Assembly (NCBI GenBank): GCA_016748015.1 | Contig: JAAOMT010000695.1 | Coordinates: 1-64,000, forward strand | Direction: 5' to 3' | Source: Geosiphon pyriformis uo1 | Lineage: Eukaryota > Fungi > Glomeromycota | DNA: 64,000 bases | Shown here: positions 14,690 to 57,550 of the stretch, one piece after another | Layout of the letters: every line of letters begins with the position of its first letter | How positions within the stretch are numbered: position 1 is the first letter of the stretch | Notes under the pieces: generated by a model | The model's input: only the letters and a program-made list of their open reading frames with translations | Told to the model about the DNA's origin: nothing | The model's database searches: none | Program-made: the position numbers and the translations under genes

Positions 14690-16260
14690 CTATTGATAAA
14701 ATACACTGCAATTACCCATGATAATACCGAAATAAGGGCCGTAATGTTCTTGAATGCTATTCTCGCCTGCGATAGATTGTCCAGAATTACATTCCTAAAT
14801 TTTTGTTTAATTGAATAATCAGTTCTGAAGCTTTTACTTGAACTCACAAATTTCGAATTGAAAAACAAGGTCAATGCTATAATTATAAACAAGGGTTATT
14901 ATCTTCTACTAACCTTATTCTCCCCTGTTAAATCCTCTCCAGGAATCCAAAACTTTTCCTTAATAAAGCGGTTCACTCTGAAATAATTTCTTTCTAATTT
15001 GAAAATTTCTTGGGATCTTCCGCAATCCCATACAGCTTCTCCATCAAATAAAACGGCATTTTTATTTTCAAGACAATCACAATCTATTGGTCCAAGCCAT
15101 ACTTCTCTTTCATGATGTTGCATTATTGAGCGCCTATTTTCAATTGGAAGAAAATGTGGAACGTAATCGTTTCGACGAGTAACTCTTGTGACCTTTACTA
15201 ATTCATTCATCATTTTGGCAAACAATGTATTTCCCGTTCTTGGTTGACCGTAGGTATAAATAGAAATATTAATTAATCTTTTAAATTGGTTGATTTCGGG
15301 TGGATGAGATCCAATAATATTCATAATTGCAAACGATAAACCCGCTATAGCCGCGTACGCTGTCAATTTTAAAAAGAAAAATAAATGAAAATTACTTTAG
15401 AAAAAGTTTTTGAAAACGAAAAAAATCTAAATCACTCACCACCACCCACTCCATGTCCACAAAAAGTAATTTTTGTTAACTCCTCGTCTTCTATATGACC
15501 ATATATATTTGATAGCATAGCATCCATCATAAGGGAGACCTCACCGAACCATTCTTTATCAACTAGTACTAATGCATTTGTCGACATTCCTGGAACACTA
15601 AATGGTACCAACTCATTTGTTCTATCTTCCCATTCGGCTTTGGTCAAAATAGGAGCTTTGAAATGTACAAAAATTTGTTCTAATTTCACATCCGTCAATA
15701 CGGTACCTGTTATATATGGAAATAGTGAAAAATTTATTCGAATTGAAGAGTCGTCAAGATTGGAAAAGAATTAGATTATTATAAATACCAAAGATATCTT
15801 TGCCATTTTTTACCAAGCTTCCAAGAGTATTAATTAAGGAATATGGAAAACAATAGGGCATATTAGCATATAGAGCTTGCATTTTTAATAATGCAACTTC
15901 ATCCCTTTGAGTGATGTCAAATAGTCGTTTTTTAAGGTATACTTCATTATCAAAGTCTGTTCTTTTGTAAAATAAATGATCGTCTATAATTTGTAACGTT
16001 TTTGCCGCAAATGAAAATCGAGATAATTTTGAAAGTTTCTTGATTGATTTTGAAATACTTTCAGTTGGATAAAGTTTATTACGTTTTAAATTTAGGAAAT
16101 TCTTCAAAATATTTCTCAATTTTAAACCATTCAAATGGAAAGAACTTCCAATTAAAATAAGGAATAAGAATATTAAAATTAATAAAATCGAATAAAATTG
16201 GTTTGATTTTATTGAAAAAAATCGAAAATTTTTGGTAGAATTTCCTTGAGCTGTATACAT
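14690..16260 (-). CDS. Class-3 lipase-fold protein A, nucleophile Ser>Gly (predicted pseudo-lipase)
   Basis: 4 exons. N-terminal hydrophobic segment, KKR, ANMPYC, FKAP, FCGHGVGG, YTYGQPRTGN, NDYVPH, DCDC, last exon ECNSG..EHYGPYFGIIMGNC. Confidence 0.85.
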
Positions 16261-17124
16261 TTTTACTTAAAAAAAATTTGCACAATTTAATAAGACAGGA
16301 AAAATTAATTTTTTAGCTCTATATTTGAAGATGATTAGAAAGTATATTACAAAGTAAAATTTGTTGTGGGGTGTTTTGAAACAATTAAACAAATATTTCT
16401 CAATGATAGGCAAAAGTTTTTTGAAACTTGTTATTTGTTATGACATATCAATATCGGAATCTTGAACAATCCTTATCAATTTAGCATAAACCATTTAATG
16501 CAAGTAATTTAATTATTTTCTAGAGTACTTGAACATATATTTTTGTGAAATAGATAAAAGAAATATCTAATTTGTATATATTTTTTGCTAATTATTTATT
16601 ATTTTTTTTTATATCTAATGTAAATGGTATGAAATTTCTTTTGTCAATACAATCAGAAATAAACTTTTTTTTTTAGTAATTTATTCAAAAAAATTTTATT
16701 GTGCCTTTTATTTTTAGAATTATTTATTAACTTGAATAAAATTTAAAAATGTTTATAATAGAAATTTCTTTTAAATTTTATTTTAGAGAATGACAATTTT
16801 GATATAAAAATTGGTATAAAATTTTTTTATATATTTTATTTTTAAAAATGACTAAAAACTAATAACCTAAAGTTAAGATTAATTAGTTTCTAAAGAAGAC
16901 TAATAGCAAAATTTATTAAAATATAATTTAAAATTCCAAGTAATTTTGAATATTAATTCGATAAGAAAATTGTTTTATTCAAACTAATATTAATTTGTCC
17001 AAATTAAAATATATTTTGTTTAATTTACCAACATATTTTTATTATTCCTATTTCTTTTTAACATTTAAAATAATTGTTTCTCAAATATATCATTAAATGA
17101 TTTGGAATCACAAAAGAGTTACAA

Positions 17125-17290
17125 CCAATGGAGTCTAGATTTTAGATGAGATATCGATGTTTTGGCATCTTATTAGGGGGTTTTTTAATTCCTAAAGAGT
17201 TCGACCTAGAACATTTATCAGTAATAGATTTTCTATCACAATTTTTTTAATGCTAATATTTTAATACAATTAGCGGACCATTTAATACTG
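17125..17290 (+). repeat. Dispersed repeat, degenerate inverted match to 27285-27515
   Basis: Shared blocks ttttagatgagatatcg, tagaacatttat and acaattagcggacc occur in the same order on the reverse complement of 27285-27515. Confidence 0.6.
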
Positions 17291-20200
17291 CGCAATTTTT
17301 TGCAGTAGATATCCCATTCTTCTTAAACATTTCTACCTTATAACATTCATTTTTACTAAAATTAAAAAACCTATGTTTTGTTATTATAAATAAGCACACA
17401 CGTGCAATTTAAGGCCATTATTACTGCGATTTTCATGATATTGAGAAAAATATCCCAATTTTATGTGATTGTGTTTATTGATATATAAGTCAAGAATCGG
17501 TTCTTTCTAATGATATTTCTGGCTATAAAAAACTATCATATATAATATTTTTTGGTTAATGGGATTTGAAAAATGGTTATTTTGACACATATAATTTTGC
17601 TGTAGCTATTGATTAAAAAAATTTCTTATCAATGATATTATTAGATGAATAATTTCAAAATATGGAATACTCATTATAAATAATGTGTATTTTGGACAAT
17701 TTGCCTCTATTAACTTCAATATTGTAATTTTTTTTAAATTAAAATTTCTATTCATAAGATCAAAAATGGCTTCTGTTGTATTATAAAAATATTTTTCTAA
17801 TATGCTTCCTACTTTTAAAAATTATGAGATTTTTCTAGTCAAGTTCTTAAATTAGATTTTTCTGATCTAAATTATAAACCTCTTGTAGTTGGGTTGTTTT
17901 AAAAAATGCTTTTTCCATTAATCAAATTTAGAAACAAACGTAACTTCACAAAAATAAGTAAGATGATTTAACGAATGTTTCAGAACAATTAAATTCAGTT
18001 ATGTATTAGTTTTTTGTTGACTAAAACACTTTTTTTAGGAATTTAATTAAATTAATTTGCTGTAATCTTTGTAATTGTACTATCGTTGGTTTAGCTCAAA
18101 TAGATAAAACTAAATTTCTTGATTTGAAATTTTGATATATTTTGAGAGCCCCATTTAAATTAAATTAAATTAAATACCAATCAATCAATCAAGCATTTTT
18201 TTTTAAGATTCATTTATTCATATGTAAATTAACACACAAATATTCAATTATTTACAACTTTCTCAAACAATAAAAAAATTTAAAATTTAAAATCTAAATA
18301 CTAGATAGAATAAAAAATATTCATTACATAAAAATTTTTATAGCGTGATTTTTTATTTAAATTTTTTTTTAATAGTTTACAATTATTTTCAGGCTATATA
18401 AATTTGTTTGGATAAACAATAAATCATGTTTAATATAAACAACAATAAAAAACTTTTTGAATAAGATTAATTATTCCGGCAAAATTTTACAAGACTTAAA
18501 AAAACAATAATAAGTAAATTTAAATTTTAGTACATTTTAAAAAAAAAATTTAAATATAAAAATTTATTTCGAAATACAAAGCAAAGCAAGTTAACATTTT
18601 CAAAATATTCTTATCAAAAAACATTTGATAATACAAAAATTTCAATTTTGTATTAAAATTGTTATATCAATATATAATAAATAATAATTAAATAAATTGC
18701 AGTTATTTTTAATTATATAATTTATGAGAAAAATAATAATAAAAATTTTATTTTAAAATAATTAAACTTTTTATTTCTAATATTTATATTATTAATTATT
18801 AAATTTTACAATTATATAACTTTTATATGTATTTATTAAAAATAAAATAATATTTTTACATTTTTTAGAATTTGTATTTTATATTTGTATTAATATTTCA
18901 ATAATTATTTTTAGTCTTAATATTCAATTAGTTGTTTGATAATAATTCACACTAATTATTTTAATTACTCTGAATATTTTAAATTTATATTGTCCTACAA
19001 TATAACAAAATAGTTTTAATATTTGACAAATATATAATAAAAATATATAAATATAAACCGGCTTAATTATAATAACGCCTACTGCAAATGGTTTACCTAG
19101 AACTTTTAGTAAACAGAATTTTGATATCCTTAATTATTGAACTCTGAAAGGGATAAAAATAATGATATTTGATATTTGATTTGATTAAGTATGAAATTCT
19201 TATTTGGGTTTGAATTATCATTTTTATTGAAAAGATTGATATTTATTACCTCACAAAATTGATTTTTAGCTTTTTCAGATATTGAAAACCAAGTACATAC
19301 TTTAAACATAAAAATTCAAAGGATCAATATTTCAAGATAGCAGACTTGGCACATTTATTATTTAACCTAATTTTTGTGATTATGGTGTATACCACGAGTC
19401 GAACATTAGAAAGAAAAGTATACTGACAAAAAATTTGAAATATTGATTTTGTTGAAAATTCAGAAGTAAAAATAATTAACTTGCCAAATATAAAAATTGT
19501 AAATCTTTTCTATGATTTATAATTGAATTCGATATAGAGAATAATACTCATCAAAATTTAAAAAATTTGGCGAAAAAATTTTAAGTCTCAATATTTCTGG
19601 TCAGTTCTATGATCAAATATTTGATAAATATAATTGAACTGGAATTGTAAAAGACATTTGACTTTTAAGTGTTTTAAAAATTCAAAGTTGTTTTAATTTT
19701 GATGTTAATAGTCATAATTTAAGCTAAATACAGATTTTTGCTTGAAAATTTGAGATGGTTAATAATTGGGTTGTCAGTTTTCTAAAAATATTTGTGTACC
19801 TGTTAGAATAGGAAACTTTTCAGATATTGTAAGATAACTTTTATTTAGATCTTTGATCTCAAATTTCCTCTTGGATTTCAAATTTGACCGAATAATTTTA
19901 ATAAATAGGTTCTAAACACTACTTGTTTTAGGACGCTTCAAATTATCAAATACAATATAGTTTTATTGCTCCCCGCTGATTTTATCCACCAAATGATTCT
20001 CAAAAATAGTCTCTATCATTTATTTATTCTTGATGCCTACCGATTTGATTGAAAAGTGTAATCTTCTATATTTGAGGTCAATTTTAATGACGAACAAGAA
20101 AATTTTATGAATTTCACTTCTCTAAGACATGTATATTAAATTGGGCTTTACTTTTGATGCTTACTGTACACTGAAAGATAGACAAAATCTATTTCATCAC

Positions 20201-21362
20201 TTTTTATTTATGTTATAATGTGAAATGATACTAGTGTATGAGCAATGATCTTTGATGAAGTTCCCTCTTTCTTTTATTTACTTCCAAGCCACTAACAGAG
20301 ATGTGCAGTGTAAGGAAAAAATCACATGTGAATTTTTGTCATATTATTTAAAAAATATTCTCGTTCTGCATCTTATTTACTTTTATTCTCCTAATGAAAT
20401 TACATTCATAGATGAGGCCTCGAATGAATCACCAAAATTGTGCGAAAACTTACAGCTACTCAACTCCTTCACAAGATTTTATTTATTGTGTGTCTACATT
20501 TAACTTATGGCATCCTAAATTAGTACATGTCAAAGCCTTCATCGAATTGAAAAAAAAACTTTTAGAATACTTAGCAAATGCATTCTTGGAGAGATATGAT
20601 TTCGATATTTAAAGATTAATATGGTCATTTGAACTTCTCGATTTATTGAAATTCTTTCACAATCGACGAAACAACACTATGAATGATATATCAGAAGTTT
20701 GCTTTTGATCATCGATTATCTGATCCAATTACGTTTAGTGTATCTTAAATTTGGCTTTTACTTTTGCCAAACCATCAAATTTATTTCGCTACGTAAAAAC
20801 CCCTTAATCGCAAAATATTCAAGATGATAAAGGAAAGTTTTCATAAAGAATCAAGATTTTAAGTTAATTCTACCGGTCTAGACAGCCAGATAAAAGCAAA
20901 GATCATGCATCTCTGTGTCTTCCGAATTGTGTTTAAAGTTAAAACTAAAGATATTTACCGGATGAATTAAGAACCATTTTACAAGATGAAATGAATAACG
21001 AATTTAGCAAGCAAACTCTTTTGATTGATATTTGAGTTTATTTTCAGAGCTCGTCTTAAAAATATCATTAAGATTGTAATTTAAAGTTTTCAGTCTCTAT
21101 AAGAAATTTAATTTGAACTAATTTTTCAATGTTAAAAGCTCTGTAATTTTGATATTAAAAATTAAATTTTCCATCATCTTTCATTAAAGTGTAAGAATCA
21201 AGAGTTTTAATTTAAATCGTAATTACAGTCAAAAAAAAACATTCATTCTACATTTCTTAATGCAGGTAACCTATTGACTGAAAGATGCCAAAACCTTCTT
21301 CCAATAAAAGATAATGATCTTTCAAGACTCCCTTTTTTTTTTTGAGAGAAAGAAGCAAAGAT

Positions 21363-22811
21363 TTAATACACTTCCTTGTCAAGCGCAAACCCTTCACAAT
21401 TCCCCATAGTTGTTCTAAGATATGGGCCAAAATGAACATCATGCTCTTTATCTTCTAATGAATCCACTGTGCCTAAGTTACATTCCTTCAAATTAAAAAG
21501 CAGTAAGTTTTCACAAGGTAACCCAAGCCAAAAAACAACATATTACGGTAAAATTTATTCCTTACATTGTTTTCATCAAAATCTAGCAGAGATTTCCTTC
21601 CGGAACAATCATATATCACATCTTTTACTTTTTTCACGTTTAAATTACAATTACAATCCTGATTTTCAATCCAATATTCTCTGTAGTAATGTAAAAAATT
21701 TCCTTTCGCCATAAAATCTCTTGGTATCCAATCATTTGAATGAGTGACGCGAATAAATCCATTATAATTTAACGTTCTCTTCAAGAATCTCACAAAATAG
21801 AAATCTCCAACTCGTGGCGCGCCAAAAGTTATCACCGAAATTTTAGAGACATCCATCTGAAATTTCTGAACCATCAATGTTTGAATATATGTGGCTGCCA
21901 GGATTGCGTATGCTTTCATAAAAAAAAATTAGTTTCAAAACATTGAAAATTTACATTGTATGAAACTTCATACCTCCCCCAATTCCGTGCCCAACAAAAT
22001 GAATCCTCCAAGGAGATTCGGTTTTTTTATTTCCCCAAAATTTTTTAAGTTTCTGGATGAGAGAAGGCATCATTTTTTGGACATGCTGATGCCACACTGA
22101 GTCCACGAGAGGTCTTTGCGAGAGATATTTTTCCACTTCAATAGGGAGAAGATCAATTGGCCGTTTTTTCCATTCATCTCGAGTATAATGAGGACCTCGA
22201 AAGTAGGCAATAATTACCATGCCTTCCAAGGTTTTCTGAAATGCATCGGCTGGATAAGTAAATTCAAAAATAAGTTATTATTTAATTTCAAGATATTATC
22301 CATATTCAGAGAATACATCTTATTAAACAATAAGAAACTTACCAATAACATTTTGGTCCAAAATGACTTTACCAATTTCATTATGCTCTGGAAAACAATA
22401 AGCGAAATTTGCATATTGCGCCATTCTTCGAAGAAAGTTAATTTGTGCTTTGTCAGTCAAACTTTCTTTATGTGGGGGTGGGAATACTGGTTCTTGTGAT
22501 AAATAATATTTGGTGGACCGTTTAGATGGTGGTTTTAATTCATTCTTTTTGAATTTGGTAAAAATTTTTAAGTTAAACTTAGTAAGTCTCTGTGAGATAT
22601 TCGACCATGGATTTATTTTTTGAGGGGAAAAAGACGAATCAATCCCCTTTGATTTTTCAATAGAGCATCGGTTTGCATTATTCCAAAGCTTAATTTCATT
22701 TTTGGAATGAAGATTTGATAGATTGGGTTTTGGCAAAGCTCCCGAATAGGATGAAATGTAGTCAAAAAATAAAAAGGCTGACAAAAATGAGAATTTTAAA
22801 ATTAATTTCAT
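21363..22811 (-). CDS. Class-3 lipase-fold protein B, Ser>Gly
   Basis: Signal peptide MKLILKFSFLSAFLFF, SKRS, ANFAYC, YFRGP, FVGHGIGG, TFGAPRVGD, NDWIP, DCNC, last exon ECNLG..VHFGPYLRTTMGNC. Confidence 0.88.
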
Positions 22812-22868
22812 TTGGCGAAAATAAAATTTATGTCAAACTTTTAATGGCCTCATTAATAAATCCCTGAC

Positions 22869-22881
22869 TTATACATGTACA
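22869..22881 (-). promoter_or_regulatory. TGTACATGTATAA motif upstream of lipase-like gene B
   Basis: About 60 bp upstream of the ATG; an identical 13-mer lies upstream of gene C. Confidence 0.4.
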
Positions 22882-24475: not shown

Positions 24476-24488
24476 TGTACATGTATAA
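24476..24488 (+). promoter_or_regulatory. TGTACATGTATAA motif (palindrome plus TATA) upstream of lipase-like gene C
   Basis: About 60 bp upstream of ATG 24549; same motif and spacing as for gene B. Confidence 0.4.
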
Positions 24489-24548: not shown

Positions 24549-26074
24549 ATGATGTTAAATTATAATTACATTTATTCGTCTAAAAAAACTGTGGGAAAAG
24601 AAATTATTCTAGCGCTGTTTTTATCTTTTATTTTATTTAATTATTTGTCGCTTTTCAAAGATCAATTTACTAAATTTTTAAGAAAAACCACTCCCATCTC
24701 AGACAATTTGGCTCCAGCAAAATACACACTATTTTTACTCGAATTAAAATTGAATTTTACCCTTCAAGAAAAAATATATCAAAACGAACATGAAAAGAGA
24801 TCACTCTTTTCAAGAGCTACGGGATTTAACAATGATAAAAATTTTATCCCACCCAAGAAGTTTTTAAAAGATAAAGATCTTTTTAGACTTTTTACTACGA
24901 TGGCTCTCTGGGCAAATATTCCTTATTGTATTCCTAAGGCTTCAATATCAGGTCCAGGATTTATTGGTAAGATAGCTATCAAAATAAAAATTTTTTTTGT
25001 CGAAAATTTCACCATCATTCTTCTTTATTTATCAGGTGATGTTGCATACGATCCACAAGTTTCAATAATTTTTGGATATTTTGGCGGTAATTTTTGAAAA
25101 AAGTTTCTTTCTTTAAACCTTAAAGCAAAAAAAAAATTATTATTCCATTTTTTTTAAATTATTTAAAATTAGGGCCTAAAATAACCAAAACACAATTAGA
25201 AACTACCAAGTTTCAAATGATGAAATTGAGAGGAAATGGTTATTTTAAAGTTGATTTGCATTGGTGGACTATGTTAAGGGATCAATATTGTGATGCTTTT
25301 ATCAATAAAATAGAGCATGGAATTTACGAAATTAGAAATAGAATGGGATCAAAACAACGAATCGATATTTTTCTAACTGGGCATAGAGTTGGAGGATGTA
25401 AGAATTTTATAAAATCAATATTTTCATTCCAAAATTATAAAATAGATTTTAAATTGAAATTTTAACCATTCAATTACTATCAACTCAGTCTATGCCCAAA
25501 TATTAGGCTTTTTACTCCTGGGTTTCCTAGCTGTAGATGAAAATGTTAACATTCATGTTGTCACCTTTGGCTCTCCACGTCCAGGTGATTATCAACTTGC
25601 TAAACAAATCAACATTGGCTCTCCAATTCAAGGGAATTATCAAGTTTCTGAGCAAATTGACAAGCGAAGCAATAAATTAAATATGTACAGGGTTACGCAT
25701 ACTAATGAATTTTTTCCCCATTTCCCAAAATATTCGGTAACGGGTGTACAATATATACATCCTGGCACTGAGTATTGGATTGCGGGTATTGATTGTGATT
25801 GTAATGAGCCAATAGTTTATGAATGTCCAGGATTTTCAAAAAAAAGTCAAAAGAAATATGGTGAAAGTCTGGTATGTCTTCTTCTTTTGATTAAACTTTT
25901 AAAAAATTCTTAAGAATTAAAAGCTTAACAGTTTTGTTTTTTCTCATTTTGTAGCAATGTAATTTAGGGACAGATGGTACAGGAACAAGCACCCATGACA
26001 CCATTTATTTTGAAACTATATTTGAAGACTGCACGGAGTTTCTTGATGACCCTAGTTTTTTTCCAAGAAATTAA
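24549..26074 (+). CDS. Class-3 lipase-fold protein C, Ser>Arg
   Basis: 5 exons. TM-like IILALFLSFILF, EKRS, ANIPYC, YFGG|P, LTGHRVGG, TFGSPRPGD, NEFFPHFP, DCDC, last exon QCNLG..THDTIYFE..EDC. Confidence 0.85.
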
Positions 26075-28184: not shown

Positions 28185-29633
28185 TTAACTACAATCTCCC
28201 ATTCTAATGTCGAAATAAGGCCCATCATGAAAAAAATCATCCGGAACGTTGATGATTGATTGTCCTCCATTACACTCCTAAAGAGAAGAATTTTTTCAAA
28301 ATTTTATTGATTCAAAAGATTTTCTTTAAAAAAAAAAACCTACCATATTCTCACTATTCCATTTCTCAATCCATATTTCTCTTTGAGTCAATTTAAGTAA
28401 TCGATTATTACAATCCCAATATGAATATGGATGAAAATTAACATCATCGGAACAATTGCAATTTTCTAATGGCTCAATCCAGATTTCAAACCCAAAATGT
28501 TTCCACTTCAATAGATCACGAGGAAAGTGTGGAACATGGTCATTTCCATGGGTTATACGATGATGTGTAATTATATCATTTGCAAAGTTACTGAATTGGT
28601 TATTCCCAATTCTCGGAGCTCCAAATGTGATAATCTGTTGTCCAATGTTATTCACATCTATTTCAGGCCATAACTTCGATTGAGTAATCTCATATCTTTG
28701 AATAGCCCATCGGATACCAGCGATTGAGGCATATGCTATTATTTCAGAAATATAAAGTATTTCAGATTTTTGATTATCGAAACTGAAAAAAAAAAATCTT
28801 TAGTTTCCCAAACCTCCACCAATACCATGCCCAACGAAAAAAATTTCCCTCGTGTTGGGACTTTTTTTTAAAACTTCCCGCATCGTTTCTAAAATTCTGG
28901 GAAACATGGATTCAATAATTTCCGAGAATAGTTTATTAACACGGGCACCATGGTCAAATATTGGGAAGCCTTTCACTTCAAATAAAATTTGTTCATGGAT
29001 TATATTGGGCCAGGTAATCTTTTTTATTTTCTAAGAAATAAATAAATAAATTTCTATTTAGTGAATTTAATTCTGACATTCTATTTCAGGAAATAAAAAA
29101 TAATTACTGGTCCTCCAAAGTACACAACTAAAGCCGTATAAAATTCTTGATTTTTTACAAATCCCAATTTGACTAAAGAGTAAAAATTTAAGATAAATAT
29201 CAAAAAATAATTTTTGATATGAAGTTGACCTAAATCAATTGTTTTATTCTGAAAGGATCAAACCAGTTATAGATCCATTTGTTGAGTTGCAATAGGAGTC
29301 ACTTGCAAGGTATGCCAACTGTTTATAAAGTGAGAATAAATATTTGTCAGTTTCTATTAAAGTTTTAGGCAACGATTGAGATCGTTTTGTGACTCGATTA
29401 AATTTGAAAGGAACTTTAATTTGATTTTTCCAATTAACTATGATTGGAAAAGTGAGATTTTCATTCTGTTTGAAGAAATTTTGAATTTTTAGAGCTTTAT
29501 GAGAAACTATCCAATCTTCAAAATTTTCATGCGACCAAAACTGAAATGCAAAGTATATAAATATTGGAAGGATAATTTTTCTTCTCGATAAAATTTTGAA
29601 AGCTTTCATGGCAAAATCTTTAAAAGAAGTCAT
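28185..29633 (-). CDS. Class-3 lipase-fold protein D, Ser>Gly
   Basis: 5 exons. TM-like IILPIFIYFAFQFW, TKRS, ASDSYC, YFGGP, FFVGHGIGG, TFGAPRIGN, NDHVPHFP, NCNC, last exon ECNGG..FHDGPYFDIRMGDC. Confidence 0.87.
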
Positions 29634-33091: not shown

Positions 33092-34567
33092 TTACATACA
33101 GTCACCCATCGTTATACCAAAATAAGGACCAAAGTGATTATCCCTGCTGGAGTCTGTAATTGTTTGTCCAGCGTTACATTCCTAAAATTATTATTTATTC
33201 ATAAAATAAAAATATAAAGTTTTATTAAGCTTATAAATTTCAGAAGAAGAAATAATTTATATTATAGATAAAATTATTTCTTCACGAACCATATTTTCCA
33301 TCGCTAGATTATCACCAGGAGTCCAAAACCTTTCCCGAATAAATTGTTGTATTCTAACTAACTTTTTTTCTTGATTATCTTCTAATTGTCCACAATCCCA
33401 TATAACCTTGTCTGTGTTTTGGGAACAATTACAATCTATTTCAATCCATATTTCTCTTTCATGATGTTGCATTATTGTGCTCTCATTTTCAATTGGAGGA
33501 AAATGTGGGAAATAATCATTGTAATGAGTTATTCTTATAACCCTTACTATTTCATTCATCATTCTAGCAAACATAATATTTCCGACTCTTGGTTGACCCA
33601 AAGTACCAATAGAAATATCAAGTGGTAAATTTGAATCCAAAAGATTCATTATTACAAATGATAGGCCTGCTATGGCGGCATAAGCTATTTGTTTTTTAAT
33701 TAAAAAGAAAAAGAGTGTCAAAATTAGTAAAATAAAAAATATGATATCCTTCCCTCTATTAAAAGAACTAACCACCACCAACACCATGTCCACAAAAAAT
33801 AACCCTCTTATATCCACTATCTTTTAGTAAAATATTAACTTTGTGGTTAAGAAATTTCATCATCAATGAAACATCATCAAACCATTCTTGATCTACTTTT
33901 ACTAATTCATTTTTCTTCATTCCTGGGACACTAAATGTTACAAGCTGGTTTTTTCTAGCTTGCCATTGTGTTTTTGTGAAATGGGGGCCTTTAAAATACG
34001 CAATGATTGTTTTGATTCCATCTGATTTTGTTACATCAGCTTTTAGATTTATAAGAATAAATAAATAAGGAAAAATTTTAAACCAGATTAATTTGGTTCA
34101 AAAATCAATTAATTGAATAATACTCAATTTCATGAAATACCAGTAATTTTATCCTGTTGCTTTATCGATTTTCCAATTTGATTATAAGGAAAGCAATAAG
34201 GAAAATTTGAAGCCGTAGCTATCAATTGTAATTTTAAATTGTAGAGTTCGTTATTGGTAAGGCTAATTACTCGTTTCTTAGGGTATCCTTCATTATTGTG
34301 AGCTGATTTTTTTGAAAAAAAATTAAAGCTGTTATTTTTAAATGTTTTTATTGGAAATGATAATTGAGGAATTTCTGGAATTTCATTGTAATTTTTTGGC
34401 TTTATAGTTAAGAAATGGAGTGAAAAAGAACATGGGAATTTGAGGTCATTGAAATAGTAAAAAATTTTGGCCAGAAAAATTATTTTAAATAACAATATTA
34501 AAAAGATAGAACAAAATTTCTTTGATTTGAATAAAAAGAATTCTTGCATTTTTAACATGATCTGCAT
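33092..34567 (-). CDS. Class-3 lipase-fold protein E, Ser>Gly (closest to A)
   Basis: 4 exons. TM-like FCSIFLILLFKIIFLA, KKR, SNFPYC, YFKGP, FCGHGVGG, LGQPRVGN, NDYFPHFP, DCNC, last exon ECNAG..NHFGPYFGITMGDC. Confidence 0.87.
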
Positions 34568-38381: not shown

Positions 38382-41300
38382 ATGTCTAAGCGGCATGAAC
38401 CAGAAAAATCCTCCCCGATTCGTAAGGAAGGCATCAAGAAACAAAAAAACAAAGATCTTGAACTCTATTTCGAAATCAAGGTGTCGAAAAGACCAGGAGT
38501 GGGGACATTGGGAAGAACAGTAGCACTCAAGGCGAATTATATACGCATCGTTCAAGTAATTATTTCCGTGGATTATAAATTCTTTAAATCGGAAGGTCAT
38601 GATTTCAACTGTAAAAAAAAATTTAATACAGATTTCACACTATTCGCCTCTCAGCTACTAGATCGCTTGATCTATCATTATAATTTTCTCGTAGAACCTC
38701 CAGTTAAAACTCCTGTCGCCCTTACGATTTTTTCCAAAATTGGAACTGATGGAACTTTTAGTGATGTCTGCCCCGTGTTTGATGGGAACAGCTCTATCTA
38801 TTCTTTTCGACCTTTGCCTATTGGCAATAAGGAAATTGGAGAAAAGATTTCGGTTAATTTTTGAATTTTTCGTTTCGTTTTTGCCTCGCAACCTGTAAAT
38901 TTTAAATCCTGCGATTATAATAGGTCAGACTTGGCAAGATAAAAACTTTTCATGTTACCATCCGAAAAATTGAAGAGTTGGAACTTAGACCTGTATTTGA
39001 CTACATTTCCGGGAAAACTCCCCTCAATAGCCAAATTGCTAATTGCAGGGCCATATTAAACACTATTTTTAATTATAAACCCCGAAGCACATTTGCTACA
39101 TTAAAGAAAGGTATATTTCCCGAAGTTAATAACCAAAAACCAATTCTTTTGTCCGGAGGTATTCAGCTAAAACTTGGATTATTTCAAGCTTTGCATTTAG
39201 GCTGGGGTAAGTAAAAGCATAATTATTTTAAAAATGACTATTTTAATTAAATCAAATCTACAAATTTTAATTTTCTAGATCATATGTATCTTAATGTGGA
39301 CGTTTGCGCAGCTACTTTTTATCCGAGTATGTGGCTCATCGACGTTATAGGCCGCTACTTGGAAAAAAATCACCGAGACGATTTGCGACGTGGTATAAAT
39401 ATCCAGGAAAAAAGAAAAATCGAAAAGGTGGATGGAATTAACAACAATTTAACATCTTCGCTTCAATAATTTCAATTAATTTCATGTTTATAATTTTGAT
39501 GGGATATGGAAGTACTTCCATGGAGTTCAAATAAGAGTAATCCATCGTGGAGAGCAAAAACGTAAATACAAGATTGAAAGGTTTTCACAAATGGCGACGG
39601 ATGAACAGACATTCCTAAAAAATGGGAAGCATATCACAATTCTTGAATACTTCTCTCAAACCTATGGAAAGCGATTAGAATATAAGGCTTTACCTTGCAT
39701 TGTCGTCAAAAAGAATGTACTTTTGCCGTTGGAGGTATGCGAGATAACTCCAGGTATTTAGGCAATTTTGAATATATATGTGAGCTTCTTATAATTATTT
39801 CAAGTATTGAAAGATTATGAAATTCGACATCTCAAATGAAGGGCAATCATTTAAAAAAGAGTTAAGTGATAAAGTCAAAGCTGAGATAGTTAAAACAACC
39901 GCAATGAAACCCCAAGAAAGGTTCCGTTTTATCGAAAATGGCATTCAAAACTATTTCAAGTATCAAGAGGATGAAAATCTTCAACAGCTTGGCGTCCGAG
40001 TTGAGAACCAACTTGTTACTGTAAATGGTGGATAAGAAGAATTTTCTTTTTTTCTTTTCATTATTTATTTCTTTGAAAGTTTATATCATCTAAATATGTT
40101 ATATCAGGGCGAGTTCTCGACACCCCAACTGTTACTTTTCATCCAAAATCACAAGCTAGAGAGGAAGCTCCCCGCAGTGCAAGATGGACCCTTAATAACA
40201 AAATTTTTGTAAAGGTAAATCAATTTCAACTGTTTCCTCCATATTAGGATGGCTTCTAACTGCCAAAATTCATTAAGGGACGCCAATTAGTAAACTGGGG
40301 AATTCTTGTCGTATGTGGTCAACAGGATGCTCCACAACAAAATGTACAAAGGTTCATTCGTGAAATCAAAGATGTCTTGAGGGAAAAAGGGATCGTAAGT
40401 ATTTCAGTAGTAAGCAAACAAATTTAAAGGTTTTTTATATATTAATTCCTTAAAATGTCTTATAGATGGTTGCAGAGAATCAAAATCCTTACCTTCAATA
40501 TAATGATCCAATTCATAAGAATTTAGAAGAGGTATTATTCATTATACCAATCCAAAATTATCAAAATGTTTACTTCAAATTATTATTATATCCCTTCAGG
40601 CGTTCAGTCAAACAATTGAAAGATGTCATGTTAACAAAAATGGTCCACCCCAATTGATCATCTGCATAATTGCGAAGAAATCCAATGAGCTTTATGGTCG
40701 TATAAAGATGTTATCAGACCACAAATTTGGCATACCAAGCCAAGTCATTATTGCTGATAAACTGCGAAGGGCGAATAATCGACCATGCTGGCAGAACATT
40801 GCTTTGAAAATTAATGCAAAACTTGGCGGGCATAATTGTTTTTTGAAGCAAGATCAATTAAGATATTTATTAGAGATGCCTGTAAGTAACTTTCAATTCA
40901 GAAATTAACGGCAACTATTGCTGATGATATATAATATTGATTATGATTTTGATATGAAAGACCATGATCATGGGAGCAGATATTTCCCATCCTGGCCCAG
41001 GGACTAACCAGAAAAGCGTTGCCGCCTTATGTGCCTCAATGGAACCATCTGGCACCACCTATTACGGCCGTTGCAGTATAAACCAAATTCTACGCAATGA
41101 AACAATAGAGAGCTTAGAGGATATGGCCTTTGAATTATTGAAAATTTTCTGGGAGAAGAACAAGCTTCTTCCTTTGCGCATTCTTTTCTATCGCGATGGT
41201 GTTTCGGACTCGCAATTTCGTGCAGTCCTAAATAAAGAAGTAATAGCCTTGAAAAAAGCTTTTTCGAGGATATGCGGTAACAATTCAAAAATACCAACAC

Positions 41301-41991
41301 TCACTTATATAATAGCACAAAAAAGGCATCACACTAGGTAATTAAAACTAGTATTACAACCCAATCATTTACTTTGTTGATTTGTTCTTACTTGACTCAA
41401 TTTTCAGATTTTTCCCAACAAATCTTCGGGAAGGTGACAGAAACGGAAACTGCCAACCGGGCACAGTAGTAGACACAATGATTGTATTGAAAGGAGAATT
41501 TGATTTTTGTATGTTTTTCATAAAGTGATATGATTCTGCGTAATAATCAAATAAATCTTTGTTACTGACTCAATTTTATTAGATCTTCAAAGCCATTCTG
41601 GTATTCATGGCACTACTCGTCCAACACACTATTATGTGTTGTTCGATGAGAATGATCAAAAGCCTGATGCTTTCCAAACCTTAACATACCATTTGTGCTT
41701 TTTATATGCACGGTAAGTATAACATTTTGACTACTTTTTTGAAAATGAACTATTGCACGTATTCCAATCTAAATATCAATGTTATCTACCTTATTAAGGT
41801 GTTCCTCGGCCATTTCAATTGTACCACCTATTGCCTACGCCCACTTGATCGCCCAAAGAGCTCGACTTTATCCAATGAATGAAGATGACCACAATTTTGG
41901 CAATGAAAATCATTCTGAAACGAATTCTCTCTCAACAGTTAGCCTTCCAACACTTCATGAGCAACTTTCAAAGGCAATGTATTTTGTTTAA
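38382..41991 (+). CDS. AGO: Argonaute (N-PAZ-MID-PIWI), about 14 exons, DEDH tetrad intact
   Basis: RPGVGTLG..L.ANY; PAZ (EYF.QTYG..L.Y..LPCI, LPLEVC); MID (YGRIK, SQ, NIALKINAKLGG); PIWI GADISHP, NETIE, YRDGVSDSQF, KRHHTRFFP, GTVVD, GTTRPTHY, AYAHL; ends MYFV. 13 GT-AG introns restore the frame. Confidence 0.96.
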
Positions 41992-47513: not shown

Positions 47514-47514
<1 letters not shown>

Positions 47515-48315: not shown

Positions 48316-50009
<1,694 letters not shown>

Positions 50010-51231
50010 TTTTTTATGCCACAATGATCGATTTTTTATCATTCTTTAATACCTCTAAATTAATCCATTTAATTTTAAGCTAATAAGATATCCAGTGTTT
50101 GTCATTTGTCTATATATCAAACTAGATATTCTCAGATTCTTGGGAAATTCGTTAAAAAAAATTGTTTTTAATTTTTAATCAACTGTTATTTTCAGGATCA
50201 ATCTAATTTTAGATTATAATCTTTAAGATTTTCAAAGAAAACAACAAACAATTTATCATTATACGAATTTTGAAATTTCTCATCTATAAGCAAAATAGTC
50301 TCCAAGTTTGAAATTAGTTTCGGAAGAAACTAGATAATCCTGCTTCTTCTTTAGCTTCAAATCACAAAATCTTTCAAAAGTTACTTTATAATATAACTAG
50401 GTTATTAATTCGTAAAAATATTTAAAATATTATTTTTGTTTAATATAGAATCAATTAAAATTTTTTTTTCACATTAATTATACAAAATTCTTGTGCCAAT
50501 AAATCTTTCCAATGTTAAATGTTGCCCTTTCCTAATGAATTCACGTTTTAGGAAACGTGAATATTTAATAGTAAATATCCATAATTCCTAAAATATTTTT
50601 TTCGAACATTCTAAAGATAAAATTATTTCAAGATTGTCAATTTCACCTGGTTTTCTAGAGAATATTATTAGTTGGATTTGGAAACAATGATTCAAATTAA
50701 CAAATACTAATAATTAGGAAGATAAATTAACTTTTTGCTCTAATTCAGATTTCATTGATCCATGGAATCGGAAACAAAATGTTATTTCTTTGGGAAACTC
50801 AAAAAAATTATATAGTTTAAGTTTATAATTTAGATAATTTTCCTTCATTCGGTTGTAAAACTATCAGTTATTATTATTCTTTTATTTGTAGACTCAATAA
50901 GAAGTGGAGGGGAGGTCTACTCTTTTTTTAATAAGTTTAGGAATTTTTAAACTATTTATTATGTTTTTTGAAAGAATTTCAGTAAAAAAAAAAAAATGGT
51001 TACACTCAGAATACAATAATGAAATAATAATGCAAATTTGATCAGATAATTAAGACTCTTGACAATATATTTATGACTTTACTCACCCTTTTTAGAAAGA
51101 AATTGAAGAAAGTTTTAGGCGTAATTATCAGTTAACATTTTAATAATAATGATTATAAATATTTTTTTATAATTGAAATTTTGAGTTTATACATGTGAAC
51201 CGCCATACATTATGATCAAAAAATACCAAAC

Positions 51232-51276
51232 AATAATAATAATAATAATAAAAATTTGAATACCCTCCCACCCCCC

Positions 51277-51308
<32 letters not shown>
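51232..51308. repeat. (AAT)n and (ACA)n microsatellites
   Basis: Direct inspection. Confidence 0.9.
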
Positions 51309-51310
<2 letters not shown>

Positions 51311-51803
51311 ATAAAATATGACCCTATCGATAATTCATAAGCGAAAGGGTTCCCCGTGTGACCAACTTTCAAAATCATTAAAAAGGACGAGTTATTATTA
51401 CCATTATTATTATAATTTGACATGTGATCTTGATAATTGAACCAGGGGAAAGTATTGATAATTTATGACTGACCAACAATATGATAGGGTAAACAATTTA
51501 TTTCGTAAATCCTCTTGATTTATTTGATCAATCATGAGGTGTTTTAAAGAAATTATTATCCAGACACGTAAGACAATGAGTGATTTGAAAATTTTAAAAA
51601 CGTCTACAAGATTGGCAACGCAATTTTTATCAATCCTTGGGATGCTTTAAACAGTTTTTCTTTGAAATAATTTTGGAGAGACGATTGAACATTTTTTTTT
51701 TCAAAATTTCTCAATATCAACGCGTGTAATCAATCTTTTCAAGAAAAACAGCAACAGTAATCCCTCCTAATTTAATTTCAGCTAAAGAATTTTATCAAAA
51801 GTA

Positions 51804-52644
51804 ATGCGAGAAATTACAAAGGTATTTTAATATTAATTTCAGTAATAAAATGTAGAAATTTTTACGAAACAAATTCAATGAAAATTTTTGTGAATTTTAC
51901 CGCGTAAACGTGGTTATCATAAATAAATTACTCAAGTTTGAAACGATCGTTTCTGTAATACTTTAGAACGTTATTAGAGTTGCTGCTGCCAAGGAAACGG
52001 ATGGAATTCAAACTGATTATGGATCATTTTTGCCAATTCTAGCCGCTTCTTCTTTCTCTTCATCTGGTATAGGTAGTCAGGGCCTAATAAAATCAACCTT
52101 ATATGGTGGTAATAGTGGTGGCCATAAGTTTCAAACTTTATTTTCCTCATATCTCGGTATTCAAAATGTCATTTCACCAAACGGTACCACCCCTGCACGT
52201 CTTGCAAAAATTGAAACACGATTTTGCAACACAATCCATTCCATAAAGATGTATTGGTCAGATAATTCTTCAGTTAGTTATGGTGGGGAAGGAGGTTGGT
52301 TAAAAGGTTCTTTCGAATTTCGCGAAGGTGAACAAATAAGCGCGATCGTGATCCGGACGAATGGTATGCACTTGAAAGGGTTACAAATAACAACAACTGA
52401 ATGTCGACTCAGTCAACGATGGGGTTCCGTTGATTTTTCTGGCGATGAACAAGTGTTGAAGGCTCCAAGAGGATATGAGATTATTGGGTTACATGGAACT
52501 ATATATCAAGAACGGATCCAGAGCTTGGGAATCATTGGTAGTTGGGTTGATGCTATACCATTATTTCCGAGTGTTTGTACTGATGAAAGCGCTAATTCAG
52601 TTACCGAACGAGATGATGAATCAGAGGGCTCACATCAAATTTGA
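51804..52644 (+). CDS. Jacalin-like (beta-prism) lectin domain protein (exons 51804-51821, 51967-52644)
   Basis: STLYGGNSGGHKF, YGGEGG..SFEFREGEQI, LQITT..SQRWG, APRGYEIIGLHG..IQSLGI match the jacalin pattern. The short first exon is tentative. Confidence 0.8.
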
Positions 52645-53928
52645 TTCAAGTGTTTTATAAAATACTTGTTATATAAGCTAAACTAACAAAGAAAAATGTA
52701 TTTTTGATAATTATAATTTGGGTTTCTATGTAAATTGTGATAAATATTTGCTATGTAAAAATGGAATTCAAGTTTTTCTAGGCCTTAAATAAACGCGATA
52801 TTATATATTAACCAATCGAAGTCTAAGTATATTCCGGGATATAGTTTTTTTCACATAAAAAAAGATTATCAAAAATTGATTTGAACTTGGTTTTTTAAAA
52901 AATTCAAATATATCCATTTATTTAGGTCCAATTAATTTTATATTTATTTTGATGAAAAAAGTTCAGTAATAAATACCGCCAAGTAGATCAACTCATTTCA
53001 TAGGATAATTTTCAATTGTATGAAAGCTAACATTTTAAAATTCATGTTGAATCTCGGATTTTCGCCACAATTGGGAGTTTTTTTTTAGTAAAAAATTCGG
53101 AATAACAATCATTTCGATCGAACAACGCAACACATACTCCTAGGGACATCGTTTTGTGTTGCGAACGTGAGAAAATCTTTGTATATATGTGGGAACGGGC
53201 ACATATTTAGACATTATTAAACTGAATGAATTTTTATTTGTAAATAGAAAAAATGTAAAATCCAGTCACACAAAATACAGATTAATAATTTATTTAAACA
53301 AATCTATAGTTTTTCAAAAACTCTTATTAAAATCTAAAATCTAAAGAGAAATTTAAAGATAACGCTCGAATTATCATTTTTTGCTTTGGATTTTTCAAAT
53401 TTTTAGTTAAATTCTGCAAGTCTTACAATCAATAATTGAAGAAACATTATGTAATCTAATTGTATTTACATATTTAATAAATCACAATTTCGTCTACTTA
53501 AATTTAAAAGGGATGAGATAAGGATATTCAAAAAAAAAATGGGTGTTTTACTTAACAGATATGCGGAAATGAGAAGAATTTTTTTTATTGATCTCGAAAT
53601 TGTTTCAATATTACCCCCCTGATACTAAGGGAGGTTCCTGTGTCATACATTTATTTAAGAGGATAAAATTTGAATATCATTGACTTGGTCTGACGGGAAT
53701 AAAGCATTATCAAGAGCTTTAGATCTGCTAACTATAGAATAGTCTAAATTATTATTAAGAAACAATAGTTTCGATGCTATATATGAGTTTTAAAGTATTA
53801 AATTTTCAAAGATGAAAATTTGCTTCTCTAGAACTTTTTCATTAGGCTCTAGAAATTTCATTATCGCAAGTTATACCAGATAACCATTTTCCTTCAAACC
53901 TTATTCTCCTTAATTTTTTTAAAAAAAA

Positions 53929-55447
53929 TTAATGGCCATTACCACCCTTAACTTGATTTACAAACGGTGGAAAATCTTGAAGTTGTTCGCAGTTTTGTGG
54001 ACTACCCATCGTCTCCCCAAGATAAGGACCCCGAAACGAAGCTATTCTTTCATCGATATCCGCTTGCATTGCCAAAAGACAATACTTTGAATTAAGAATT
54101 TTTTCAAGGTTAGAATAAATTCTTGATCACAAAATACATTGCAAACCCCAAAAAAATTGCCCAAGAGCTATATACCTGGGATTCATAATTGGGAACTTGA
54201 TAGGGTTCCTTGTTGGGGAAACATTCATACACAATAGGAGGGTTTTGTGGATCGTCTAAGCAATCACATCCTTCGGCAAATGGAATCCAAAATTCTTTAT
54301 GATGGTGTACGTATCTAGATAAGATACCTGTTGCTGGGGATCTAGGATAGGTTGGTGCAATATCGGCTCCAAATGTAATTCGATAAAGATTGGGAAGTTG
54401 TTTGCTTACATATTCACCAAAAAAGTCAATCCCAAGACGAAATTGGCCAAATGTGTAGACAGTAATTGGAAGTTCAGGAATTTTTCTACGGTAATGCAAG
54501 GCAAGGAATACTGCATGACCTGGAAATTATAATTTGAGATTCGTTTTGAATTTTTTATTGGTATTTTGTAAATTAGAATATCTAAAAGATAATTCGAAAA
54601 CAAACCAGCCCCGAATCCATGTCCGACAAATGTGATACGCTTTCTTTTTTTAGGTTGAGCTAATTGATCGTCCACCATTTGAATCAACCGGTTTTCAGCT
54701 TTTAGATATTCGTCATATAATTTTTGATGGACGTATAAACCTTTAACTATATACGGGCTGACTTCGGTATCAAAAACGGTCGAATCATTTATATTAAAAT
54801 CGGGGCCTTTAACTCGAATGAACACAATAATCTCATTATAGGGAGTCAAAATCGCCTTAGCTATATTTCAAGATTTTGTGGTATATTGAATTATTTGAAA
54901 CGCAAAATTAGAAAAATTTTCAAAATTTTCAAAGAGGTTTACCATAGTCTCCTATCGAAATCTGATCTTGCGATGAGCTCAAACAATAGGCTCGATTCGC
55001 AAAGTAGGCATATTTCTTGAAATCCCAGAGTACCCTTTGATTCTTGATCTGAATTCGATAGTCCTCTGGGTTCTCGCCTGCAGGTGTTTCAGGTAAAATA
55101 TTACGTTTGAATATTTTAGTTGAACGAATTTCGCCAAGAACTTTTGATAATTTAAAGGCAAATTGAGGTATCACCAATGTTTTATTAAAAATAGTGAAAT
55201 TATGATTTATTTTAAAATTTTTTGATAGATTGAAGTTTCCAAAATCATGAAAACCTGACTCTAAGAAACGATCATGATCCTTAATTTTCTTATGAGCAGC
55301 CCAAAGTTCATGGAAATTTGAAACGAACAAAGAAAAAAGAATTATAATAAAGAATAAAGGAATATAAATTTTTTGTATCAAATAATTATCTTTGACCATT
55401 TTTTGATTAAATTTTTTAAATTCCAACGAGTACAATTTCCCATTCAT
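53929..55447 (-). CDS. Class-3 lipase-fold protein F, Ser>Gly and His>Phe
   Basis: TM-like IPLFFIIILFSLFV, FKRN, ANRAYC, RVKGP, FVGHGFGA, TFGQFRLG, ADIAPTYP, GCDC, last exon YCL..ASFRGPYLGETMG..NC. Confidence 0.85.
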
Positions 55448-55620
55448 GTTTTAAACAAGAGTTTTTAGAAAATTAGCAAGCTTTTTTATTATTATTATTA
55501 TTATTTTTATAATCACTTTTTTATTTCGTGGGAAATCGATAAATTAGATTATTAGTGATGGGGTAAACTTAATTAAACTCAAATATTTATCATTCCCTTT
55601 TAATATTTCAAACCCGAGAT

Positions 55621-55695
55621 ATATTAGATATTAGATATTAGATATTAGATATTAGATATTAAATTTTAGATATTAGATTTTTAGATATTAGATAT
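55621..55695. repeat. (ATATTAG)n heptamer tandem repeat
   Basis: About 10 units, some degenerate. Confidence 0.9.
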
Positions 55696-56036
55696 ACTTT
55701 GTTTCCATTAAAAGATGGTATCGCCATCTTTTAATCTTTATAAATATTTTAAATATGAAAAATAAATAGTTATGATGCTCCTTATATTGAATTTTTTTTT
55801 AATTTACGATAAATCTTTAATAAAATTCATGAATACTTAACAACATTCCTATATTTTTCTTTTCATGGCCAAAATTTTGATTTTCAAAAATTAATGGTCA
55901 TAAAAAAAATATCAGTATAATAAATTAAATACTACTACATTTAATTATAAGAGTTCATTCAAAAAAAAAAAAAAAAATTTTTGGAGTGATATGATCAAAA
56001 AATTCACCGTTGTGGATGCTCAAGCAAAAATAGCAT

Positions 56037-57550
56037 TCACAATGGTGGAAAATCTTGAAGTACTTCACAATTTTTCGGCATCCCCATCGTCTCCCCAAAA
56101 TAAGGCCCCTGAAATGAATCCAATCGCTTTTTTAAATCTGCTTTCTTTCCATTAAGGCAATACTAAAATTTTTAAAAAAAATTTGAACAATTTGATCTCA
56201 AACATATCTTTCTTTCGGAAATAGAAAACACAAAATTGAAAATTATATCCCTACTTGTGATTCATAAGATTTATGCGCAAAAGGATATTGCTCAGGCAAA
56301 CATTCAAACACGGTAGGAACGTCTTGCTCATCGTTAAGACAATCACATCCTTCCGTAAATGGAATCCAAAATTCTCTATGATGTTGTACGTATTTAGGTG
56401 TAACAGTATTTTCATTGTTCAGGGGATAGGTCGGTGCGATATCGGATCCAAAAGTGATTCGATAAAGATTGGGAAGTTGTGTGCTTACGTATTCACCAAA
56501 AAAGTCAATTCCAAGACGAAGCTCACTGAATGTATAGACAGAAATTGGAAGTTCAGGAATTTTTCTACGGTAATACAAGGCAAGGAATACTGCGTGACCT
56601 TTTAAATCAATTTGTAAACTTTTATTTTATTTTATTTTATTTAAAAAATGTGGGATTCAAAAAATTTAGAAATAAATAATAAGTGATAATTCAATAACCC
56701 ACCAGCTCCAAATCCGTGTCCAGTGAATGAAATTTTTGTTCTATTTTTGGCTTGATTCAATTGAGCGTCAACAAGCTCAATCAATCGTTCTTCGGCATTG
56801 AAATATTTGTGATAAAATTTTCGATGTACATATAAACCTTTAACTGGATAAGCACTATAATCCGGGCCAAAACCAGTGCCAAAAATATCCGGATCATATA
56901 TATTAAAAGTTGGACCTTTGACTCGAATGAATACAATGACTTCATTATAGGGAGTCAAAATTGCTTGAGCTAAGTTTTAAATTTTTTGGAATGTATAAGC
57001 AATAAAATTTTATTGGAATTTTCTTAAACTGGCAGAATTTTGAATTTCTGAAATGGGAATTACCATAGGCCTCCTTTGAAAGTGCATTCTCGGGTGAATT
57101 TAAACAATAAGCTCGGTTCGCAAAGTAGGCATATTTCTTGAAATTATAAAGTACCCTCGGATTTTCAATTTTAATTCGAAAATTTTCAGGTTTTTCGCCT
57201 TGAGGTAGTTGAGGTAAAGATCCACGCTTAAAAATTGTAACTGGCAAAAATTTATTAATATTTTTGGAGGTCCTATATTCGTAATAATTTTTTGTTAATG
57301 TATAATTAAGTTTGGCAAGATTGCTTGGTCGTTGTAGAAATATTGATCTATTTTGATTCCTAATATTATTATTAAAATCGGTCTCCTGGAATGTTTCATG
57401 ATTTCCAAATTTTTTTTCGACCTTTAAAAATGCGTTAAAAGATGAAACTAAAAAAAAAATTAAAAGAGCGGTAAGAAAGAAGGAGAGAAAGTTTTTTCGA
57501 ATCACCAAATTTGTTTCAAAAATTTTGTTATTAAATATTCGAAATGACAT
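56037..57550 (-). CDS. Class-3 lipase-fold protein G, Ser>Gly and His>Phe (tandem paralog of F)
   Basis: TM-like FLSFFLTALLIFFLV, FKRG, ANRAYC, RVKGP, FTGHGFGA, SDIAPTYP, GCDC, last exon YCL..DSFQGPYFGETMG..NC. There may be a 1-bp loss just before the stop compared with F. Confidence 0.85.

Follow-up and report, generated by a model that had tools for sequence, protein, structure and literature searches.

Seven serine-less class 3 lipase-fold genes of Geosiphon pyriformis and the large, apparently lineage-specific family to which they belong

INTRODUCTION

Catalysis by the fungal class 3 lipase of Rhizomucor miehei (RML) depends on the triad Ser144, His257, and Asp203 and on an oxyanion hole formed by Ser82 and Leu145 (PMC5466060). 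Non-catalytic proteins of the wider alpha/beta-hydrolase fold are already a known kind: neuroligins, neurotactin, glutactin, thyroglobulin's C-terminal domain, and insect yolk proteins are exported, lack the nucleophile, and serve in adhesion, binding, or storage (PMC3531081). In EDS1, PAD4, and SAG101, a class 3 lipase-like domain serves in signaling. Here we analyze a window of 64,000 nucleotides of Geosiphon pyriformis DNA (contig JAAOMT010000695.1 of assembly GCA_016748015.1, positions 1 to 64,000) that carries seven genes, A to G, for class 3 lipase-fold proteins, none of which has the catalytic serine.

The window is fungal DNA and AT-rich (27.7% GC), and G. pyriformis is placed in Glomeromycota, Archaeosporales. 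Its partner in intracellular symbiosis is Nostoc, not plants (PMC11134847). The analysis follows up an original prediction, made from the letters of the window, that these genes encode secreted proteins whose serine was lost ancestrally and which then expanded as a family under selection for a non-hydrolytic role.

RESULTS

Seven intact genes without a nucleophile serine

A six-frame scan of the window found the elbow motif GHx[VIF]G[GA] exactly seven times, each at the position originally predicted. In 200 local shuffles the same motif occurred 0.045 times on average and at most once. All seven elbows belong to gene models of 4 to 5 exons encoding 378 to 429 amino acids, with GT-AG introns of 61 to 119 nucleotides and no internal stops (0/7); a search for an eighth copy within the window found none. 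The open reading frames are essentially intact, as had been claimed, and public predictions agree with the models at 100% over 419 amino acids for F (the whole protein), 303 for A, 299 for G, and 242 for C. Three introns are shared by all seven genes. Two are phase 1, one closing exon 1 and one following directly on the elbow; the third, of phase 0, precedes the final exon. Pairwise identity is 20 to 35%, except for A/E (46%) and F/G (56%).

The nucleophile position holds Gly in six proteins and Arg in C, and none of the seven has Ser, Cys, or Asp there. An RNA contig covers this codon in F and does not differ from the genome. Two further changes at the active site were confirmed in all seven models. 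The oxyanion strand reads, from A to G, FKAP, FRGP, FGGP, FGGP, FKGP, VKGP, and VKGP; Pro occupies the Ser82 position throughout, so both the hydroxyl and the backbone NH are gone. The counterpart of the VHxGF motif reads, in the same order, VDKEW, VDSVW, VDLHW, VNKLF, VDQEW, VHQKLY, and VHRKFY. The original account of the site was right about the lost Ser and oxyanion Ser, but it had missed that the rest of the triad is largely kept across the family and that His is lost in F and G. The triad acid is retained in all seven proteins (Asp in six, Glu in C), and by alignment the triad His is present in A to E, with Phe standing at its position in F and G.

At the level of the sequence alignment, no conserved Ser, Cys, or Asp near the site offers a substitute nucleophile. 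A and E have a Cys preceding the elbow, but it was rejected as a candidate, its column being Thr, Val, Cys, or Ile across the family. Restoration of a serine by alternative splicing was likewise rejected: the phase-1 intron lies downstream of the nucleophile codon in all seven genes, so splicing cannot supply one. Judged from these residues, a serine-hydrolase mechanism is impossible in the seven predicted proteins.

Five of the genes keep both triad partners or their equivalents. Gene A (public G9A89_000043; 429 amino acids) occupies 14690 to 16260 on the minus strand, with exons 16260-15789, 15706-15440, 15359-14914, and 14794-14690. Its elbow is GHGVGGA at 15458, with Gly codon GGA at 15452-15450; Asp and His are kept, and P0159 matches residues 127-429 at 100%. 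Gene B (404 amino acids; 21363 to 22811, minus strand; exons 22811-22343, 22249-21974, 21912-21566, and 21485-21363) has the elbow GHGIGGA at 21992 with Gly codon GGA at 21986-21984, keeps Asp and His, and is 83% identical to its paralogue P0022. Gene C (G9A89_000045; 398 amino acids), the only one on the plus strand, spans 24549 to 26074 with exons 24549-24966, 25036-25086, 25173-25397, 25489-25871, and 25955-26074; its elbow GHRVGGF at 25379 has Arg codon AGA at 25385-25387, its triad acid is Glu, and its His is kept. Gene D (378 amino acids) lies at 28185 to 29633 on the minus strand (exons 29633-29264, 29172-29108, 29030-28814, 28735-28344, and 28277-28185). It has the elbow GHGIGGA at 28832 with Gly codon GGT at 28826-28824, keeps Asp and His, and is 72% identical to its paralogue P0025. 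Gene E (392 amino acids; 33092 to 34567, minus strand), whose overlap with public G9A89_000047 is inferred from position and similarity, has exons 34567-34141, 34039-33773, 33684-33290, and 33181-33092, the elbow GHGVGGA at 33791 with Gly codon GGT at 33785-33783, and both Asp and His.

The other two genes keep Asp and have Phe in place of the triad His. Gene F (G9A89_000052; 419 amino acids), at 53929 to 55447 on the minus strand, has exons 55447-54943, 54860-54606, 54519-54176, and 54084-53929, and the elbow GHGFGAG at 54624 with Gly codon GGA at 54618-54616; P0012 matches it at 100% over its full length. Gene G (G9A89_000053; 407 amino acids), at 56037 to 57550 on the minus strand, has exons 57550-57064, 56969-56703, 56598-56255, and 56162-56037, and the elbow GHGFGAG at 56721 with Gly codon GGA at 56715-56713. 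A 1-bp loss in G just before its stop had been suspected; comparison with F makes this plausible and places it after the last Cys, where it probably shortens G by 10 residues relative to F.

One additional intron is found in C (25086-25173) and one in D (29108-29030). Both sit at the oxyanion GP motif, offset by 5 nucleotides: that of C is phase 1, before the second Gly-Pro, and that of D is phase 0, after the Pro. Intron slide or independent gains are both possible. The paralogues P0030 and P0025 have an intron in the same region. Two further sequence features were noted. F and G have a new His five residues past the nucleophile position, at a site that is usually Tyr in the family (His in 3/85 aligned members). 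A CxC motif in the exon of the ExW motif (for example, A residues 340-342) is invariant in all seven genes, and none of the ordinary lipases retrieved has it. Since the mature part has six cysteines, the CxC must reflect self-pairing, re-paired C-terminal cysteines, a link between subunits, or metal binding.

Fold and domain membership

Against Lipase_3 (PF01764), for which the cut-off is 22 bits, the exon-3 pieces of six genes (A, B, D, E, F, and G) score 22.4 to 41.5 bits. The tested piece of C has no Pfam match, but C itself matches the family profile at an E value of 5e-35. The family profile in turn matches the Thermomyces, Rhizopus, and Rhizomucor lipases at 1e-31 to 1e-23, pairing GHGxGG with GHSLGG, FxGP with FRGS, and VDxxW with GHDGF. 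AlphaFold models agree with this assignment. Mature A (pLDDT 91) superposes on the Rhizopus lipase 6A0W with Z 25.3 and a root mean square deviation (rmsd) of 2.2 Å over 229 residues, and F (pLDDT 87) with Z 27.4 and 2.4 Å over 242 residues; EDS1 and PAD4 reach Z 16 to 18 against the same two models. The short lid helix is kept in the A model and is coil in the F model. The proteins stop right after the last lipase-fold Cys and have no EP domain of the EDS1 family.

By fold and profile, then, the seven proteins belong to Lipase_3, but they do not qualify as active serine lipases. PF01764 is nevertheless annotated on the public models of A, E, F, and G, which bears out the warning that annotation as a "lipase expansion" would mislead.

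A large family apparently confined to Geosiphon

We searched a profile of the seven exon-3 pieces against 1.84 billion representatives. This gave 309 matches at E<=1e-10, of which the best 150 were used, and the combined searches yielded at least 162 family proteins. Origins were looked up for 49 members, ten of which rank with the most divergent on the tree, and every one is from G. pyriformis. The identified non-Geosiphon matches were multi-domain ordinary lipases and one Chromosphaera protein, all outside the family clade (SH-aLRT 99). Word-index searches, a method insensitive to distant kin, returned only Geosiphon proteins; in the ESM Atlas, the only matches were clusters of ordinary Lipase_3 proteins. 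The family is apparently Geosiphon-specific and has hundreds of members, close relatives such as Ambispora having lain outside the direct comparison. Members form tandem arrays on many Geosiphon contigs, with birth-death turnover, and some two-domain public models may be fused neighbors.

Among 160 readable elbows (173 domains with the CxC motif), the nucleophile position is Gly in 131, Ala in 15, Ser in 7, Arg in 3, Asp in 2, and Phe in 2. Of the CxC-motif domains, 168/172 retain the triad Asp and 119/137 the triad His. At the oxyanion Ser82 position, 63/83 have Pro, Lys, or Arg and 3/83 have Ser, and the family cysteines are invariant.

The Chromosphaera protein, P0140 (Chromosphaera perkinsii, EukProt), is an ichthyosporean protein of 1467 amino acids with lipase-like domains that read GYGVGG and GYGLGG. 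Because it groups outside the Geosiphon family, its Ser-to-Gly loss looks independent. The sole match of a metagenome scan, L002, was rejected as a chance match in the opposite frame of a bacterial gene.

Loss and probable regain of the serine

With ordinary lipases as the root of the tree, the seven Geosiphon members that bear Ser are scattered over five positions, nested among members with Gly or Ala. A tree that holds all serine-less members together was rejected (delta log likelihood 319, approximately unbiased [AU] test p = 1.3e-4, LG+G4). The AU test used 52 rows picked after the first tree: the window genes, all Ser-bearing Geosiphon members, their neighbors, and 8 outgroup domains. The Ser codons read in two Ser-bearing members are AGT, one step from GGT, and where the oxyanion column is readable, none of the Ser-bearing members has Ser or Thr in it. 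Taken together, the nested Ser copies, the AU result, the AGT codons, and the missing oxyanion Ser/Thr indicate that loss of the serine most likely preceded the expansion of the family, with several regains later. The predicted ancestral loss is in this way supported. One three-member Ser clade lies in a deep, poorly supported part of the tree and could be a case of retention.

Selection on the family

The genes are maintained by selection, in line with the original prediction, and in the family this selection is a mixture of purifying and positive. Pairwise omega (dN/dS) is 0.21 for A/E, 0.29 for F/G (p=3e-15), 0.40 to 0.45 for A versus its paralogues, and 0.57 for B versus P0022. For the young pairs E/P0153, E/P0154, and D/P0025 it is about 0.65 to 0.8 and not separable from 1. 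In a 13-gene clade around A and E, model M0 gives omega 0.45 (p=7e-21 versus 1). Model M2a assigns 60% of sites to omega 0.13, 29% to 1, and 11% to 2.9 (p=6e-10), and M8 is preferred over M8a (p=2e-10). We used our own implementations of the site models, with relative branch lengths fixed and no recombination screen. The result was stable under F3x4, F61, and MG frequencies and without gap-adjacent columns; across four codon-frequency models, a positive class of about 10% of sites has omega 2.3 to 3.5, with likelihood ratio test p values from 1.5e-3 to 3e-19.

Constraint is strongest at the elbow and core motifs (mean omega 0.45 for pocket-side motifs, 0.32 for the elbow). Most of the positively selected sites are in two places: the hairpin that precedes the oxyanion strand, and one face of the long helix in its C-terminal half. 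By topology, 12/39 sites at the pole away from the pocket are positively selected, versus 4/65 on the pocket side; this partition was drawn after the sites were seen and is descriptive only.

Expression and predicted export

F and G are transcribed. In run X2, queried over these two genes, a contig of F lacks its three introns, joined exactly at the modeled junctions, and another contig skips intron 1 of G, in both cases with no substitutions listed. Because the contigs skip introns exactly, we take this run, catalogued as "DNA?", to be an RNA run of the same sample. Genomic contigs over F and G, possibly from the source run, agree base for base. With this expression and an M0 omega well below 1, the seven genes do not look like the decaying copies that the original prediction had set as its alternative.

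All seven proteins have an N-terminal hydrophobic segment (Kyte-Doolittle peak 1.8 to 3.3), as expected of the secreted proteins that had been predicted. In six of the seven, though, the segment follows a basic leader of 17 to 28 residues and could be a signal anchor; B has the most classical-looking signal peptide. For those six, a cleaved signal peptide is no more likely than a membrane anchor from which Kex2-type cleavage frees the protein. A variable pro-region of 70 to 110 residues follows, with a KR site 25 to 43 residues ahead of a conserved YC in all seven. KR or RR upstream of the mature domain is found in 7/7 window genes and 34/48 family members. This predicted layout resembles that of the prepro-lipases of Mucorales. 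The mature part has six conserved cysteines, and N-glycosylation sequons are present in all seven.

Some public models leave out this N-terminal region. The public model of G has a first exon from 58843 (58760-58843) and omits the hydrophobic leader, and those of A and C start at internal Met residues 127 and 118. Since such models start downstream, secretome counts based on the annotation would miss many family members.

Neighboring genes

Four of the public proteins encoded in the window are G9A89_000043, G9A89_000045, G9A89_000052, and G9A89_000053; G9A89_000047 was added by position and similarity. The neighboring genes are typical of Glomeromycota: BTB-TLDc, Sel1-repeat plus tyrosine-kinase-like, Argonaute (Piwi), and HPPD genes, within 1941-7545, 38382-41991, 48599-50000, and 58411-58656, where the short stretch at 58411 is putatively BTB-gene-like. 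A jacalin-like lectin gene at 52030-52644 on the plus strand (PF01419, E 8e-7), 1.3 kb from gene F, is matched by a contig of the RNA-like run X2. A role for lectins as partner-recognition proteins is plausible.

DISCUSSION

We lean, at slightly better than an even chance, toward reading the seven proteins as exported, non-hydrolytic binders of amphipathic microbial ligands that have diversified into a repertoire. One secreted fungal class 3 lipase would have been the ancestor of the whole family. Each protein would enter the endoplasmic reticulum through its N-terminal hydrophobic segment, form three disulfides, and be cut at the Lys-Arg site, as in prepro-lipases, freeing a domain of about 290 residues. 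Its destination may be the wall or the medium, or else the space surrounding engulfed Nostoc, which is topologically external. There the old substrate groove would hold an amphipathic ligand (an acyl lipid, a glycolipid, or another microbial surface lipid) without cleaving it, and the Gly-rich elbow, with the Asp-His pair in most copies, would give its head group a polar seat. With lids that vary and an outer surface that changes fast, the hundreds of paralogues could then act as a repertoire to recognize, sequester, or handle partner or competitor microbes. A more specific version, in which the diversified proteins are extracellular receptors for lipids and glycolipids of cyanobacteria or bacteria and serve in the selection, engulfment, and maintenance of Nostoc, is tentative, and we would sooner expect it to be wrong than right.

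Several points weigh against the favored reading. The positively selected sites lie mostly away from the pocket, which fits a protein partner or evasion equally well; Asp and His are retained much more often than Ser, a pattern also compatible with non-canonical catalysis; and the connection to Nostoc is one we infer solely from the family's confinement to the Geosiphon lineage. The second point leaves room for nucleophile-free catalysis, since most family members still have the Asp-His pair. The pair could act as a general base on water or substrate, as in two enzymes that catalyze without an elbow Ser, tomato MKS1 (GHALG, a 3-ketoacid decarboxylase) and Escherichia coli RutD (PMC3531081), and the Ala at the elbow of 15 members would suit such a role. 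But F and G lack the His and are still constrained and expressed. With Ser, oxyanion Ser, and His all gone and an omega of 0.29, their function cannot need the triad. Moreover, the oxyanion position is Pro, Lys, or Arg, hundreds of fast-diverging copies would be unusual for a metabolic enzyme, and His is frequently retained in non-catalytic alpha/beta-hydrolases (PMC3531081). We think this explanation unlikely, if the first of the alternatives to consider.

The clustering of positively selected sites on the beta-hairpin and long helix would instead fit protein-level decoys or effector-like proteins, in which the pocket is vestigial, the scaffold stable, and the outer surface binds or evades Nostoc, bacterial, fungal, or grazer proteins. 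Tandem arrays with birth-death turnover would fit. The pocket-side motifs are, however, strongly constrained, though many of their residues are also structural, and the partition that favors this reading was post hoc; we place it next in order and likewise think it improbable. Somewhat more doubtful still are bulk structural or storage proteins, such as wall or bladder components or spore lipid carriers, comparable to the lipase-derived insect yolk proteins. Predicted export, disulfides, and sequons in all seven would suit them, yolk proteins are non-catalytic members of the fold, and many copies could serve gene dosage. Yet dosage families tend to stay similar, and these proteins are 20 to 56% identical and have positively selected sites. 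Pseudogenes that decay or were amplified neutrally, or else an artefact of assembly or annotation, could account for the young pairs with omega near 1 and the probable 1-bp loss in G. They are very improbable given seven intact frames at such divergence, invariant cysteines, the M0 result, spliced RNA for F and G, and the genomic contigs identical over both genes; no sign of a pseudogene array, in the form of disrupted frames, omega near 1 overall, or, for F and G, missing transcripts, was found. Binding of amphipathic ligands by exported pseudo-lipases is the reading we retain.

To our knowledge, no molecules by which Geosiphon recognizes and manages its Nostoc partner have been described. 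A lineage-restricted family of more than 160 predicted-exported pseudo-lipases under mixed selection is a concrete candidate for that role. If the receptor-repertoire reading were true, it would be a molecular system specific to the Geosiphon-cyanobacterium endosymbiosis. A plain count of Lipase_3 domains would suggest heavy lipolysis, and about 95% of the sampled domains lack the serine, which overturns the default reading of the annotation. Repeated Gly-to-Ser regains without an oxyanion Ser would offer a natural experiment on the loss and return of catalysis. A literature search found no described serine-less class 3 lipase family in fungi or Geosiphon, the G. pyriformis genome paper being outside its reach, and a Peltigera pangenome preprint does not mention lipases. 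That genome paper, by Malar C and colleagues in 2021, reportedly noted an excess of Lipase_3 domains. New from this window are RNA-confirmed members, F and G, that also lack the His.

Among known systems, the plant proteins that the original prediction offered as analogues are a loose match. Of EDS1, PAD4, and SAG101, the last alone lacks the S-D-H triad (bioRxiv 10.1101/2021.12.15.472806), and its retention in EDS1 and PAD4 makes those two imperfect analogues. At Z 16 to 18, all three share the class 3 lipase-like domain with the Geosiphon models, but they act inside the cell and carry a fused EP domain; the Geosiphon proteins have a predicted export signal instead. MKS1 and RutD share the alpha/beta-hydrolase fold and an elbow without Ser and are nonetheless catalytic. 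They belong to other subfamilies and are single genes, with no sign of substrates common to the Geosiphon proteins.

The fungal class 3 lipases of R. miehei (3TGL), Rhizopus (6A0W), and Thermomyces (1TIB) have the same fold as the Geosiphon proteins (Z 25 to 27, rmsd 2.2 to 2.5 Å, about 230 to 240 residues), the motifs GxPRxG, RxTxxxD, and HxxxExW, and a layout of leader, propeptide, and dibasic site that is also predicted for the Geosiphon proteins. By motif, two of their disulfides have what we take to be Geosiphon equivalents. The Geosiphon proteins differ in lacking the nucleophile Ser, in having Pro, Lys, or Arg for the oxyanion Ser/Thr and VDxxW for VHxGF, in a deletion of about 25 residues after the first Cys, in the new invariant CxC, in HxGPY for HxxY with His lost in F and G, and in their hundreds of members. 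The non-catalytic animal proteins of the fold come from the cholinesterase or pancreatic-lipase branches. They form small families, unlike the Geosiphon family, which descends from fungal class 3 lipases and has been massively expanded in one lineage.

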